A DNA stretch of 64,000 bases, taken from assembly GCA_964035545.1 (NCBI GenBank), contig OZ037773.1, positions 8,833,751 to 8,897,750 on the forward strand, given 5' to 3'. The translations under genes and the position numbers were made by a program. This document shows, piece after piece, positions 25,182 to 62,303 of the stretch. The notes beneath the pieces were generated by a model. That model ran no database searches. It was not told the origin of the DNA and saw only the letters and a list, made by a program, of their open reading frames with translations. This DNA comes from Bugula neritina. Taxonomy: Eukaryota; Animalia; Bryozoa. Each line of letters starts with the position of its first letter. Within the stretch, counting starts at the first letter, position 1.

Positions 25182-26987
25182 ATGGCTAAGAAAGATTTCT
25201 TTGATCTCTCCTTATGTGTGCTCATCTCTTGTAATACTGAAGATGTCTTGGCTCAATCAATATCCGCTTCAATAGTGAGAAATGTTAATCCAAACTTTGA
25301 CGACTTGGGTCAGGTTTTAACCGATAGACTTCAGTTTATCGATGACAGAGGTTACGCAAACTCAATTTCTCAAACAGCAAATATATTTCACGCGCCTCAT
25401 GATACTGATAATTGGGAAAGTAATAAAGCTCTTATATATTCAACATTTACAGCACCATATATCTTGTCTGCCACTTATCTTTCCGAGCTTTTCTATGCAA
25501 CTCAGAATGAGTGGAGGCACAACAGAAACGTTGCTGATGAGTTCGTCATTAGCTTGTTGAGACTAGCTATTCAAAGTAGACTAGAAGACGAGACATTGCC
25601 GACGAGAATACGCTATGACCTTCAAAGGTTAATTGAATTGGTTCCTCAACCCCCTCTGACTGCAGAAGTGGCCGAGAAGCTCCGTCAAATTCAGGCATCC
25701 CGCCACCAAATCATCCTAAATGCTCCTCATCAGTTTATTGAGGGCGAAAAAGAACAGTTCACGATGAACTACACCCGCTCTGTCAAGTTTTGTGTTCGAG
25801 AGTTTAACTGCTACCCCCACTCCGCCGAGGTACAGAATTAATATTACACAGGCTATTGAAATACAATTTCAAAGTTCTAGTATTTAAAGCCAGTGGGTGA
25901 TTTAGCCTATTGTAACCAAAGTATGTGATATGCTCATATTCTATTTCTCAACATATTTTGTATTGCAGAGGATTTTGGAAGAGCTGCAGAAACTCAGACT
26001 CAACCTTCCTGGCTATGATGCGATTAAACAAGCTTATCAGAGGTGAACTTGAAATATTTCTATTCTTATTGGACAGTAGACATGTGGAGAAAAAAGTTCA
26101 GTGTTACATTAGTTTATACTAATAAGTTGAACAATGTAGTGTGTGATTAGGCAATACGTTGTTGGAAAATAATAACGATCATGAAAAGTTTGTATTTAAA
26201 GTTGTTTTCAATTTTTCAGGTCCGCCGAGCAAGAAGGGTTGGCTGTAGAGGAAATAAAAACTCGTTTGAGGTGAGTCTGCGAGAGTTGTGTCACCATGTG
26301 AGAGTTGTCTCTATATTATACTATATTATATATTATAATATATATTATATATTATACCATAGTATATATTACATACTATACACTGTTAACAGGAAGTTAC
26401 AAAGCTGGAAGCTCAGAGCTGATGGAGCTCTCAGGGATTTGTCTGTAGGCCAACCTGAGATTAAAGTAGATCTTCAAGGGGCACAAGCTTCGGTAATCTA
26501 TTTGCTCATTCCGAACTCTTATATGTTGTTGACTAGGTTAATAGTATATAATTCTAGCACAGCTTATGGTTTCTATTTCGAGTAGCCTTAGGGAGTGGTT
26601 TAGCCAGAGCATTTTCTTGGGTTAGTATTAACTACCTCCCCTACCTCTATGAGGCTTTGTCATCAACATAACTGAACTCACAGCATCAAATATTGTTTCT
26701 GTTTTACTTTATTAATCTATTAAATTCTATTGAAAGTCTTAAACTTATGTAAAATGAACATTTTACAAGTGAGGCTTTTGTGCAACATACTTAGTGAAAT
26801 GCTGTTAGTGGTTCCATGTGATTGGTTACTTGTGAACTTCTATAACAGATATGTTTTGCAGAGTGAGTTATAACTAGATATGGAGTCATTTTATTTCGAG
26901 TTCTCACCCTCGATGTGTATTAGTAAGATGTATGATTCCTGTATTGGTATTTCTTTGTAGGGAGTTACGTTGGCCGGGGACCAGTAG
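25182..26987 (+). CDS. Stand-alone uncharacterised helical-domain protein (~299 aa); exons 25182-25829, 25969-26042, 26220-26270, 26393-26492, 26961-26987
   Basis: In-frame GT-AG model (phases 0,2,2,0, as in the array genes). DLSLCVLISCNT..SIVRN and NYTRSVKFCVREFNCYP align with [17 protein letters not shown] and [17 protein letters not shown]. Confidence 0.8.
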
Positions 26988-29515
26988 ACTGAATAATCTA
27001 GGAGGTGAGATTATACACTTGTACATGTCATGCTTTCACTCGTGATGTGTGTAAAGTAATATGCGGTTAAATTATCTAACGTGGAAGTTATCTAGCCACA
27101 CGGTTTTTGAAAGTGAATTTACATCCAGGTACTGGCATTACCTGCTTGATAAGTCAATCCTTGGTTTAGTCGGGGTTATACACATTGGATATATCTATGC
27201 TCATGTGTGTTACTTGCTGAGTGATTCGGAGAACCCTTTTCTGTTAACTATCAGTATTATATCTACTCACTGATATTCACAATTTTTCTACTTTGGAAAA
27301 ATCTTTTTGTGTCAGTGAAAAGCTTAGAAACTTCCAAACCCCAAATAGATGTAACATAATCGTGTACAAGAACTTCACACAACTCAGTATATTGTAATTG
27401 TTTTAAAGTTGTCTTCTTTTCCACTTTCTTCAAGTTTTCATTCCTCCATTATTCTCTGCTCTAATGTGAAAATTTAATTCACTGGTAGATAAAGGCAGTC
27501 CTCACTCTATCTAGCTCTAAGCAAAGACTTGCTATTTTCAGTAGAAACTTGAGTAAATATTTAAGTTAGATATTGTAACAGATCAGCTATGCTTTACTAT
27601 TCACATTAGAAGATAACCAAGTGGGCTGTCTAGTAACTAGGGCTCTCTGTCTAGTAACTAGGGCTATCTTTCTAGTAACTCATTGGTGTTTGTTTTATAC
27701 TCTGTAATTTATTCTACCATTATGTTTCTGTTTATTTACAGCAAAAAACAAACAGCAATGTTAAACTATGAACTTGGAGCTGATAGCCACCAAATTTACA
27801 TGCATTCTACCTACACTTTACCTGCATTCTACCTGCATTCTACCCACAGTCTACCTAGCTACTGTCTACCTGCATCCTGTGTACAGTTTGACAAGGATTT
27901 CTAATGACAATCCTTTACCATGGCATTCTATTTATATGACCCATTCTAGATAGTTCTATTGTCGGTAGTTTTGAAATCATTATTACAAAAATCTGACATG
28001 CTAATATCTTGCCATAACTATGGCATCAGACTAATTTTTAAACTTTTTAAAAGGAAATTTCATTCTTACACTTTCACTTGTGTTTTTTAGCACTATAGTA
28101 CTCCTACAAAGGAGCATAACTCCTAATTACTAGCAATGCAGCAGTAAAATAGTTCACTATAATAATGTTTACTTTTGTTTGCTCTAACTTTTTTACTTTT
28201 ACCTATTTTCTTAGAAGGGATATTATTGCTAGATATAATATCAAATGCATCTAAACTTGATATTTAAAGAATTACACATTGATTACAAGACGTGATTTTA
28301 ATGTGTTTTTGCTCATTTAACCGGATTATTTGTGAGTGCAAATGTACCTGTATAACAATATGTGCTGATATTTTTCACCTTGAATGTATCATTTTAATGG
28401 ATTTTAGAATTTAGTAGAATAATTATTTGTGCTGTGTAGTATTGTGTGACTAATCTCTCAATTTTATTAAATAAAGTAGAATTTAGTGATTTGCTAAATA
28501 AATTATGTTTTCTGTCAAAATTCCTCTACAAATTCATATTAATTATTTCTCCGAGCTCTAGCTGATAGCTTCCTGAAAATGCAGCCCAAGGTCTTAATTT
28601 ACATTATTGGTTTTGTGGTGCAGTTTGTAGATTATACATGACTTCCTCTGCATACCTATATTATTTGCTAGAACCCATGTGCTTTTGAAGAATCCCTGAT
28701 CTAGTGTTCCGAATTTCTGAAGTTATAATTATTACTATAATGTAATTTTATCTGAATCAATTGAAATATTATTCAGTTGTACAGCCATGTTTTAGTAAAA
28801 ATGTTGAACAACATATGGATGCCTAATTTTGTGTTGTGGAGTTGAACAGTGAGCAGACATTTGCAATTTGCAACTTGCAAGTGTAGCGGGACAATATTAT
28901 GTGGTTCAGAAATGGCAAGTGTAGTAATACAGTGTGTGGTGTAGGCGTAGCTAGTGTAGTAATACCAATCTTTTTGAGAAAGTGGTTCAAGATAACACTT
29001 AGCCATAGAAACACAACATGCCTTCTGGGGCGCCATTGTACTACCCACACACTTATTCAAAAGTTTCTCACAAAAAGGCTAATATTGGACTAAAGTAAAC
29101 ACCTAATAGATAAGGGAGCTCAAAGTTCCAACAATTCTACAAGTTAGTGTTTGCAATTTGGATAGAAAGCAATAGTATAGTTGCAGCATTTCTGTGTCGC
29201 CTACCTGCATAGGCTTGAATTATTCTTTCATACATATGAATAGAATCGAAGCATAAAAAACTTAATCAGCATTCCGGTAGGTTTATAGCATACTGAAATA
29301 TAATACATACCATTGCTTTATTACAGTCATATAGTATTTATATGGTATATATACTATTAGATTTTATTAAATACTAAAATAAGTTACATTTTAAACCATC
29401 AACATTTATTGAACTCTGTAGTTTTGGCAGTTTTGTTTCTGAAATCATTTGGAGTTTTCAATAATAATGACGTAATGTTCACATAACTATATATGAAGAC
29501 TCATATATTTCAGCA

Positions 29516-61400: not shown

Positions 61401-62303
61401 CATTTGTTAGATACTGTTTTAATTCAAACAATGATTGTGAGCTAACCAGGTTTCAAATCTAAACTTTCTGCACTGTTTTATATGGTTAATAATTTTGATA
61501 AACCATGCATATATAGCATATGGGATAATAACAATTCAACTTCTGAAAATATATAGTTTTATAATTTCTATATACCCAACTTAATGCATACTTGACTACA
61601 TTAAATTTCAATCACTTTTTATTATTGCAAACAGGCTTAATATAATCATATTTTGGTCCTTTTTGTTTATGTGCTAATTTTCCCATTCTCCCAAGAAAGT
61701 TCTCTAAACATAATGGCAGTTTTATTCCATTCTGTTAAAAAGTTGAACATTCTTCAACACACAACCATATGTCCCCAAGAGCCCTGCACCATGTGGTTAT
61801 TGAGTCTAAATGCATGTATAAAATGTCACAAGGTTTAGTCCATATAAATATGTAATCAAACATTTTAGGGTAGACTGTAGAGTTATCTCATCACAACAGT
61901 TGGAAAACTTTATGGTAATAACTGCTGCAGCATCTCAGCTAAACATTCTAATCATGAAATCAATCAACTTTTGCAAACCGTATGAATAATATCTAGATTT
62001 TAGAATACAGATTATTATTTTATTTTTCATGGAAAATAGAGAGGGCAACTTCTTGTAACAAATATGGAGACAGTACACAAATTATAAGTTATTTATTATT
62101 TTCATGCAAGGGTAAAACTTGAATTTGCAAATTAATAAAGTATGCATGTTGTAGGAAAGCAGAGGAAGATAGTAGGCAATACCCAAGACTTGCGCCACCT
62201 TCTAAGGCAACCTGTTCCTGCTGGTATGTGTGTAGTGGAAGGACAACTCTGGGTAACACCTTTCTTCCGCGGACTAATAAAATTTAAAATTAAGCAACAA
62301 TAA
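55407..62303 (+). pseudogene. Array gene 3: two tandem helical-domain modules plus beta-propeller, with premature stop at 59148-59150 (truncated gene or pseudogene); exons 55407-56189, 56557-56627, 56754-56816, 56964-57078, 57691-57745, 58158-58933, 59106-59176, 59552-59614, 59735-59828, 60162-60225, 60679-61365, 62155-62303
   Basis: In-frame GT-AG chain up to GAT GAG TAG, where paralogs read GAG TGG (W). The hydrophobic segment at 59860-59950 is out of frame; the propeller exons are still open. Confidence 0.7.
57108..57450 (-). mobile_element. PIF/Harbinger-type MITE (GCCTAGGGCCACAC TIR), copy 2
   Basis: TTA/TTA TSD; reverse complement of 45304-45636. Confidence 0.87.

Follow-up and report, generated by a model that had tools for sequence, protein, structure and literature searches.

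The DNA analyzed here is a 64,000-nucleotide stretch of AT-rich eukaryotic DNA from the bryozoan Bugula neritina (chromosome 9, positions 8,833,751-8,897,750; hereafter "the window"), which carries a tandem array of genes that join a shared N-terminal module, predicted below to be a catalytically inactive HEPN domain, to a rapidly diverging beta-propeller. Four co-oriented genes of this array, g1 to g4, start on the forward strand at positions 25182, 29516, 45892 and 55407, and all four contain a common module of approx. 290 amino acids; further members (g5 to g7) sit just beyond the window. The first exons are homologous by tblastn, those at 29516, 45892 and 55407 being 82-86% identical, while a copy at 58196 shows 45% identity and the copy at 25182 is far more distant. 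In protein searches, the proteins encoded in the window matched only B. neritina hypothetical proteins and open reading frames (ORFs) from metagenomes.

Gene models were built from splice sites and paralogue comparison; introns with phases 0, 2 and 2 and canonical GT-AG sites were found in g1, g2, g3 and the B unit of g4. The first gene, g1, has an exon 1 (25182-25829; like all array exons on the forward strand) that encodes a stand-alone HEPN-type module, as supported by its ORF and splice donor, by hhalign comparison to the array modules and by motif alignment. Its exon 2 (25969-26042; 74 nt, with a phase 2 intron after it) was placed by tblastn with the annotated Bugula protein P0016 and by its AG and GT sites, exon 3 (26220-26270; 51 nt, phase 2) carries the GL..EI motif, and the last exon (26961-27045) reaches a stop codon, giving a model of 285 amino acids. 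No propeller match was found by tblastn between 27100 and 29400 downstream of g1, which has neither a hydrophobic nor a propeller exon. Approximately 35 kb past the end of the window, another g1-type gene (g7; L025:5472-6194), in which ExxxR and RNxxxH motifs are intact, closes the array, so that two stand-alone HEPN genes, one predicted to be dead and one of active type, bracket the propeller genes.

Both g2 (718 amino acids) and g3 (637 amino acids) are free of stop codons through the module, a conserved tail of approx. 70 amino acids on three small exons, a basic patch, a hydrophobic tract and the propeller. In g2, exon 1 (29516-30298) encodes an A-type dead-HEPN module and is followed by exon 2 (30874-30944; 71 nt), exon 3 (38718-38780; 63 nt), exon 4 (38908-39436), the translation of which holds the end of the tail, the basic patch NLRRKREK and an Ala/Val/Ile tract of approx. 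130 amino acids, and a propeller exon (40420-41127) that runs to the stop codon. The corresponding exons of g3 are exon 1 (45892-46674), likewise A-type and the one used for structural modeling, exon 2 (47230-47300) and exon 3 (48355-48417), both placed by splice sites and contig joints, exon 4 (48553-48853), with the end of the tail, the basic patch NHRRRQEK and a 33-residue Ala-rich tract ending in GLFIIM, and the propeller exon (50195-50887), for which the only in-frame AG acceptor was used. Approximately 40 nt immediately ahead of this last exon (50140-50194, and the equivalent positions in g2 and g4) are nearly invariant between paralogues and include a second conserved acceptor, TTGCAG/CT (phase 1), which hints at alternative 3' splice-site use.

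These models agree with most of a preliminary description of the locus, which had reported four adjacent co-oriented genes sharing one module with identical intron phases and three sequence motifs (all three of which are present), two of the genes continuing through a basic patch and a hydrophobic segment into a propeller, and one gene consisting of the module alone. They do not bear out its third propeller gene, read as two modules plus a propeller, as g4 is not one intact frame in this assembly, nor its end coordinate of 62303, which lies approx. 930 bases beyond the stop codon of g4 at 61373.

Expression of the g2/g3 type was evident from assembled sequencing contigs of four runs (one recorded as RNA-Seq and three guessed to be RNA), since transcripts of this type exist among them. 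The contigs cover the exons of g3 and, repeats aside, not its introns, and they join 46671 (46671/2) to 47230, 47300 to 48365, 48416 to 48553 and 48853 to 50194, the last joint linking the hydrophobic exon to the propeller exon. The exon-only coverage and these four joints indicate that g3-type transcripts are spliced as modeled and that the hydrophobic exon is retained rather than spliced out; removal of this segment by splicing had been named in the preliminary description as counting against its reading. As the contigs are mostly 90-95% alike, they derive from alleles or paralogues. For g1, a Logan contig with P0008 was considered as a transcript and rejected, as it represents unspliced genomic DNA with 91.5% identity to the window.

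The fourth gene has a compound structure. Its A unit comprises exon 1 (55407-56189), which encodes a dead-HEPN module, and a tail of its own, identified by tblastn with the P0001 tail and by splice sites, with exon 2 at 56557-56627 and a last tail exon at 56964-57090; the unit ends either at a TAA codon (57088-57090, following VTL) or at a donor after QEK (57078/57079). The B unit begins with a B-type dead-HEPN exon (58145-58933) that is 45% identical to the A type and has no in-frame ATG. Two acceptors are candidates for this exon, i.e., 58145 (phase 0), which preserves the frame of g4 and g5 and loses that of g6, and 58158 (phase 1), a phase common to all three units. Exon 2 of the B unit (59106-59176) contains an in-frame TAG (59148-59150) that is specific to g4, with Trp at that codon in g3, g5 and g6; exon 3 (59552-59614) was placed by splice sites and translation; and in the exon-4 region (59735-60021) the main frame stops at 59868-59870. 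The Val-rich hydrophobic tract of g4 (59833-60021) lies in a different frame from this main frame, and the propeller exon (60696-61373) is open to its terminal stop codon. The stop-plus-frame layout of exon 4 was seen again in g6 and in the compound units of an independent older assembly; this recurrence suggests that the layout may reflect genuine splicing and not decay. For g4 to g6 there are two canonical in-frame ways of splicing, one reading through a Ser/Gly linker and the other skipping most of exon 4 to reach the Val-rich tract, and both are conjectural. Judged by its sequence, g4 may be two genes rather than one.

The preliminary description could not assign the module to a known family. 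Several lines of evidence now point to the HEPN superfamily, whose members are cytosolic RNases and RNA-binding domains (PMC3710099). For g3 exon 1, an AlphaFold2 (AF2) model that drew on 13 family members reached a predicted local distance difference test score (pLDDT) of 85.6 and a predicted template modeling score (pTM) of 0.84. The top match in VIA-align was the HEPN structure 2hsb of AF_0298 (Z 8.7, root-mean-square deviation 2.8, 95 aligned residues of a 126-residue chain), with further matches to the split HEPN of Roquin (4txa, Z 8.3), Csm6 (6tug and 4rgp), 1ufb, 1wol, 1wwp and the sacsin HEPN (3o10). In the exhaustive VIA-align search, HEPN structures were first and recurrent among all matches spanning model residues 12-257, and each of them aligned approx. 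95 residues taken from both ends of this range, while matches limited to residues 46-190 were generic helical bundles. We thus place the core in the helices at 22-60 and 204-250, which in the AF2 model are separated by a helical insert of approx. 140 amino acids (helices 67-197, between the N-terminal and the C-terminal pair).

Paralogues that carry the catalytic motifs support this assignment. An RNxxxH motif is present in g7, in P0010 and P0011 and in a chromosome 1 copy (L020), at the column that ends model helix 204-222, the penultimate helix; the first core helix carries ExxxR in g7 and P0010 and ExxxK in copies on chromosomes 6 and 8. Language-model neighbors of P0010 all belonged to HEPN families (scores of 0.82-0.88, to be read as leads), and a fold search of the ESM Atlas returned a Swt1-like HEPN cluster among its matches. 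With the fold matches, the location of the motif and the motif-bearing paralogues (ExxxR and RNxxxH intact) in agreement, the module is, on these predictions, a HEPN-superfamily domain with a large helical insert, represented in the window by inactive derivatives. At the column of the Rx4-6H motif the window copies read SRHQIIL (g1, 25698-25718), SSHSQIMD (A type; g3, 46534-46557) and NNQVQTME (B type); the catalytic His is absent from every window copy and the Arg is kept only in g1 (R174). At the Ex3[KR] site, g1 has the E and an A in place of R (NTEDVLAQ), and the A and B types keep K or V without the E. Loss of the catalytic His in every window copy predicts loss of RNase activity, i.e., that these domains are pseudo-nucleases.

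The domain of g1 is the same one, in line with the earlier proposal that stand-alone and receptor-type genes share a single domain. Pairwise BLASTP linked the g1 type to the array type at 3e-5, and hhalign comparison of a g1-type profile (5 sequences) to an array-type profile (12 sequences) gave a probability of 98.8% (E = 4.9e-17) over 198 columns, i.e., over the whole domain. Several searches yielded nothing: Pfam gave no significant match for any module copy, with only L020 touching HEPN_RiboL-PSP (E = 0.064), Foldseek of the module model against the Protein Data Bank (PDB) gave nothing at E <= 0.001, and the family profile gave nothing meaningful against PDB sequences. A DZIP3/hRUL138-like HEPN (PF18738) was considered and rejected, as 13 modules and the intact paralogues gave no match at E up to 10, while a true PF18738 match elsewhere in the same genome scored 74 bits.

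The C-terminal domain was modeled by AF2 with a pLDDT of 86.0 and shows 19 strands of at least 3 residues in 230 amino acids, which suggests five four-stranded blades with closure by an N-terminal strand. Its closest folds were the NHL domains of Mei-P26, TRIM71, Brat, TRIM2 and Lin41 (Z 20.3-21.2, and 20.6-21.2 for the first four; approx. 208 aligned residues), with YWTD and WD40 propellers trailing by just 1-2 Z units. The beta-propeller of the preliminary description thus stands as an NHL-like fold of about five blades, while sequence matches to the Pfam NHL model fell below threshold; the best match of the PF01436 hidden Markov model had E = 0.0033 and 17.8 bits as compared to a cut-off of 20, and one database relative has a precomputed PF01436 match. 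Neither g2 nor g3 encodes a RING, a B-box or a coiled coil. The nearest propeller paralogue outside the array (46% identity, chromosome 5) sits behind RING, B-box and coiled-coil exons, which indicates that the array propeller descends from a TRIM-NHL-like family. At least 145 related propeller exons were counted in the genome. Such NHL-like propeller exons also form large tandem arrays elsewhere, e.g., on chromosome 3 (30.79-30.87 Mb), chromosome 6 (9.1-11.6 Mb) and chromosome 8 (5.4-5.8 and 10.0-10.35 Mb), and the one examined is of the TRIM type.

All 5 genomic propeller exons of the array and 14 database copies are open over approx. 225 codons, and 17 propeller sequences show 46 invariant columns beside hypervariable positions, which argues against simple decay. 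Pairwise ratios of nonsynonymous to synonymous substitution rates (dN/dS) ranged from 0.19 to 0.70 for exon 1 of the A type, from 0.25 to 0.48 for exon 1 of the B type, and from 1.03 to 2.05 for the propeller, and the contrast between module and propeller in g2 versus g3 gave P = 0.03 (Fisher's test). The propeller thus diverges faster than the module. Splitting the propeller into strands and loops gave no sharper signal (proportions of nonsynonymous to synonymous differences, pN/pS, of 1.59 versus 1.35), with replacements twice as dense outside strands. The propeller exons are also mosaic, being reshuffled among copies through gene conversion, with long identical blocks shared by g2 and g6 and by g4 and g5. 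Given the small counts and the mosaic exons, positive selection on the propeller is likely and not proven.

Exchange of sequence was also apparent between the modules. A tract of 50-55 codons in the A unit of g4 (55842-56006, forward strand) and its B-side counterpart (58586-58750), detected with tblastx and 20-codon windows, showed a synonymous difference of 0.06-0.2 as compared to 0.5-1.3 in the flanks; so low a value within A and B modules that are otherwise only approx. 45% identical reflects gene conversion. The tract spans the last helices of the HEPN insert, and g5 and g6 show the same pattern. In g2 and g3 the first exon is of the A type and the tail exons are of the B type, and both genes resemble deletion derivatives of a compound unit. 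In the older assembly (GCA_010799875.2, contig VXIV02000533.1; L062 and L063), a compound A+B unit takes the place of a g2-type gene after the g1 homologue, and several exons contain frameshifts; the difference in unit order may reflect either structural variation between lineages or assembly error.

A family profile compared against 1.84 billion representative sequences gave 10 matches. Two of these (P0012 and P0013) were rejected as spurious, being bacterial Big_2 repeat proteins, and the other 8 were from Bugula neritina or were metagenome or read-assembly ORFs of the family. In these sequence searches the family was found only in Bugula, with few bryozoan genomes present in the databases. 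HEPN modules elsewhere in the genome (chromosomes 1, 5, 6 and 8) had no propeller match nearby among the matches listed, and the annotated two-module protein P0014 is without a propeller, so that the HEPN-propeller fusion appears, on these searches, to be confined to this array.

Several neighboring features lie outside the gene products. Intron 2 of g2 contains a decayed dispersed transposable element (31900-37600, strand not assigned) with a G+C content of approx. 0.5 as compared to 0.33 around it; it holds a gag-knuckle-like remnant, and long ORFs are absent. Across all chromosomes, at least 44 copies were scored (69-86% identity; 1,718 first-look candidates). The element lengthens this intron to 7.8 kb, as compared to 1.05 kb in g3. 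Ribosomal RNA or foreign DNA was considered as the source of this GC-rich block (31.9-37.6 kb) and rejected, as there was no Rfam match and the block is a dispersed Bugula repeat. The same intron holds a (CATATA)n microsatellite (31119-31530; approx. 34 copies of a 12-mer) with spurious ORFs on both strands. Elsewhere in the window, a retrotransposon integrase fragment (52956-53504, reverse strand; weak rve and Integrase_H2C2 matches) lies between g3 and g4, a tRNA gene is found at 13318-13388 (reverse strand; Rfam RF00005, 36.2 bits as compared to a gathering score of 29), and a weak WD40-like ORF (19546-19881, reverse strand) upstream of the array is probably part of an unrelated gene.

A hydrophobic segment lies between module and propeller. 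In g3 it is a single tract of 33 residues, mostly Ala, which follows NHRRRQEK...KSK, precedes an acidic flank and has a maximal Kyte-Doolittle value of 2.03. In g2 it extends over approx. 130 residues in four segments broken by KPK, E and KPE, with a 19-residue Kyte-Doolittle maximum of 2.97. The tract (38908-39436, 48700-48853 and 59833-60021, and also in L062 and L063) is encoded by GCN/GTN triplet repeats, 28 to approx. 130 codons long, and its length and frame vary between copies and assemblies; in the compound units it is out of frame with the upstream exon, and a Ser/Gly-rich linker is read in another frame. These sequences make a membrane anchor probable. The g3 protein fits a type II orientation, given its single tract with a basic N-terminal and an acidic C-terminal flank, while the four segments of g2, if all of them span the membrane, would leave both ends of the protein on one side. 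Known relatives of both domain families are cytosolic. Placement of the propeller outside the cell or in a lumen (type II) is possible but doubtful, a tract that is not embedded in a membrane at all is doubtful to the same degree, and a cytosolic propeller, with a hairpin or an even number of spans, seems only slightly less probable than either.

For this expressed tandem array, an anatomy of dead HEPN domain, tail, hydrophobic tract and diversifying propeller of the NHL type is well supported, as is the part of the preliminary description that saw a tandem family pairing a shared N-terminal domain with a variable propeller next to a stand-alone copy. Our tentative preference, held at slightly less than even chances, is that this is a Bugula-specific array for variable recognition in which the dead HEPN serves as a pairing, regulatory or RNA-binding domain. 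Under this interpretation, an immune-type or self/non-self system would use the propeller as its variable recognition surface, and the hydrophobic tract would hold the protein at a membrane, leaving the HEPN side in the cytosol. The target of the dead HEPN may be g7, the active-type paralogue that ends the array, and soluble competitors or partners could be supplied by g1 and the A-only unit. HEPN domains normally act as dimers. Judged by its sequence, the flanking paralogue with intact catalytic motifs would be a more obvious functional partner than g1.

A number of observations weigh against this interpretation. None of the module copies is matched by a Pfam HEPN model, and the HEPN fold matches have Z of 8-9, moderate values for helical proteins that chance can yield among helical bundles. 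Behind each pairwise propeller dN/dS above 1 are approx. 12 silent and 58 replacement differences; gene conversion blurs the signal, which falls short of significance for a single pair. The RNA evidence consists of assembled contigs that are mostly 90-95% alike, from runs mostly guessed to be RNA; the coding sequence of g1 is weakly constrained (pN/pS of 0.63 as compared to a sibling contig); three of the five propeller-bearing units (g4 to g6) are without a confirmed continuous frame; and the hydrophobic tract is of low complexity, variable in length (28 to approx. 130 amino acids) and unstable in frame, being mostly alanine in g3.

The preliminary description had gone further and proposed that g2 to g4 encode surface receptors of type II orientation (cytosolic module, propeller outside) that signal by homotypic binding of g1 in the style of TLR-MyD88 or FADD. 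Consistent with this are the lack of an N-terminal signal sequence (residues 1-17 are disordered), the basic patch on the N-terminal side of the tract and the acidic flank on its C-terminal side, Kyte-Doolittle values of 2.0-3.0 for the tract, the retention of the hydrophobic exon in transcript joints, the sharing of the whole domain by g1, and an NIT sequon in most propellers. Nevertheless, this proposal appears unlikely, as the four segments of g2 would bring both ends to the same side if all span, the propeller has its nearest relatives among proteins of the RING/B-box/coiled-coil (TRIM) type, HEPN domains reside in the cytosol (PMC3710099), and the motif-intact paralogue flanking the array is at least as likely a partner as g1. 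There is also no disulfide signature; an argument for an extracellular propeller from its cysteines was dropped, as only one Cys is invariant, and this one and most others are either unconserved or also present in the TRIM-type relative. A predicted complex of the g1 and g3 modules (ipSAE 0.00) counts neither way, as the fold of the partner was uncertain and alignments were not used. A different system for non-self recognition is distinctly unlikely; in it, membrane-anchored diversifying NHL propellers would sense an extracellular or organelle-associated ligand (a pathogen or, in this colonial animal, allogeneic tissue), clustered dead HEPN domains would recruit and switch on the active HEPN RNase that the last gene of the array encodes, and the soluble dead-HEPN proteins, g1 and the A-only unit, would serve as brakes.

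A more serious rival, because both parent families act on RNA, is a cytosolic RNA-directed system in which RNA or viral components would be the ligands of the propeller, the HEPN-derived domain would either bind RNA itself or govern an active HEPN RNase, and the tract would be an organelle anchor, a hairpin or a low-complexity linker. The NHL domains of Mei-P26, TRIM71/Lin41 and Brat, the top structural neighbors of the propeller, bind RNA, and the nearest propeller paralogue is of the TRIM type. HEPN itself is an RNase and RNA-binding superfamily (PMC3710099), and expansions that join an N-terminal HEPN to a beta-propeller in marine invertebrates have been described as intracellular immune proteins (PMC8195603). 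The even number of hydrophobic segments in g2, and the alternative in-frame reading of the compound units as a Ser/Gly linker instead of a hydrophobic tract, also agree with a cytosolic location. We nonetheless regard this system as somewhat unlikely, since the tract of g2 is strongly hydrophobic (2.97), the single tract of g3 has a charge asymmetry like that of a signal anchor, and catalytic residues are lost in every window copy. It is very unlikely that there is no coherent system at all and that the array arose recently by exon shuffling and unequal crossing-over with constraint relaxed, is partly pseudogenized, and owes its elevated dN/dS to decay and gene conversion instead of selection. 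Such an origin would accommodate the nonsense codon and disrupted exon 4 of g4, the lack of a confirmed continuous frame in g4 to g6, the transposable element and microsatellite inside the g2 intron, the different unit order in the two assemblies, the dN/dS near 1 in some pairs and the pN/pS of g1. On the other hand, the 5 genomic and 14 database propeller copies are open and keep their invariant columns, the module exons show dN/dS of 0.19-0.70, spliced transcripts exist, and the stop-plus-frame layout of the compound units is kept in both assemblies.

With these assignments, a module that had been an "unknown 300-aa module" becomes a defined, predicted HEPN pseudo-nuclease family with active-type and dead members side by side, and offers a natural case for how pseudo-enzymes enter recognition systems. 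A compact, clustered and variable family of this kind is also a concrete candidate for bryozoan immune or allorecognition receptors, of which we found no molecular description in the literature searched. If the array is only a fast-turnover cluster, it would still show how gene conversion, repeat-driven frame instability and exon shuffling make new architectures. In the same literature we found no description of the combination of a dead HEPN, a hydrophobic tract and a diversifying TRIM-NHL-derived propeller, and no paper that contained both "HEPN domain" and "NHL repeat".

Among known systems, the HEPN superfamily includes split and insert-bearing members and inactive ones (Roquin, Swt1; PMC3710099) and, like the Bugula family, has inactive beside active copies. 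Inserts of up to 60 amino acids have been reported there (PMC3710099), whereas the Bugula insert spans approx. 140 amino acids, and the Bugula domain has no Pfam HEPN match, carries a tail of approx. 70 amino acids on three small exons and was found, in these searches, in Bugula only. Among marine invertebrates, oysters have lineage-specific expansions of DZIP3-like HEPN domains with NACHT (PMC9646362), and proteins with HEPN and a WD40 propeller have been described (PMC8195603). These expansions share with the Bugula array an N-terminal HEPN, a C-terminal beta-propeller, tandem arrangement, differences between assemblies and a presumed immune role, while the Bugula HEPN is dead and not DZIP3-like, NACHT, Death and TRADD-N domains are absent, a hydrophobic tract lies between the two domains, and the propeller is of the NHL type.

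The TRIM-NHL proteins (Brat, Mei-P26, TRIM71/Lin41, TRIM2) have the closest propeller fold and, as in Bugula, a propeller encoded by a single terminal exon; in Bugula, the HEPN module and the tract stand in place of RING, B-box and coiled coil, the number of propeller blades is about five (in approx. 230 amino acids) rather than six (in approx. 275), and evolution of the propeller is fast. Teneurins are type II membrane proteins with an extracellular NHL propeller, and, should its type II orientation prove correct, g3 would resemble them in having a cytosolic N-terminal domain, a single membrane span and an outside propeller of NHL-like fold, although EGF, YD-shell and toxin domains are absent and the likeness seen is one of layout. 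In RNase L and IRE1, a sensor domain drives dimerization of a HEPN/KEN nuclease. Ligand-driven pairing of HEPN domains may be a logic shared with the Bugula array, by analogy only, as the sensor-linked HEPN in Bugula is predicted to be dead and any nuclease would be a separate paralogue; if the dead HEPN domains did switch on the RNase, a logic like that of RNase L and IRE1 would have been assembled from separate receptor, pseudo-enzyme and enzyme genes. Overall, the array fits the known marine-invertebrate theme of an N-terminal HEPN joined to repeat sensors.

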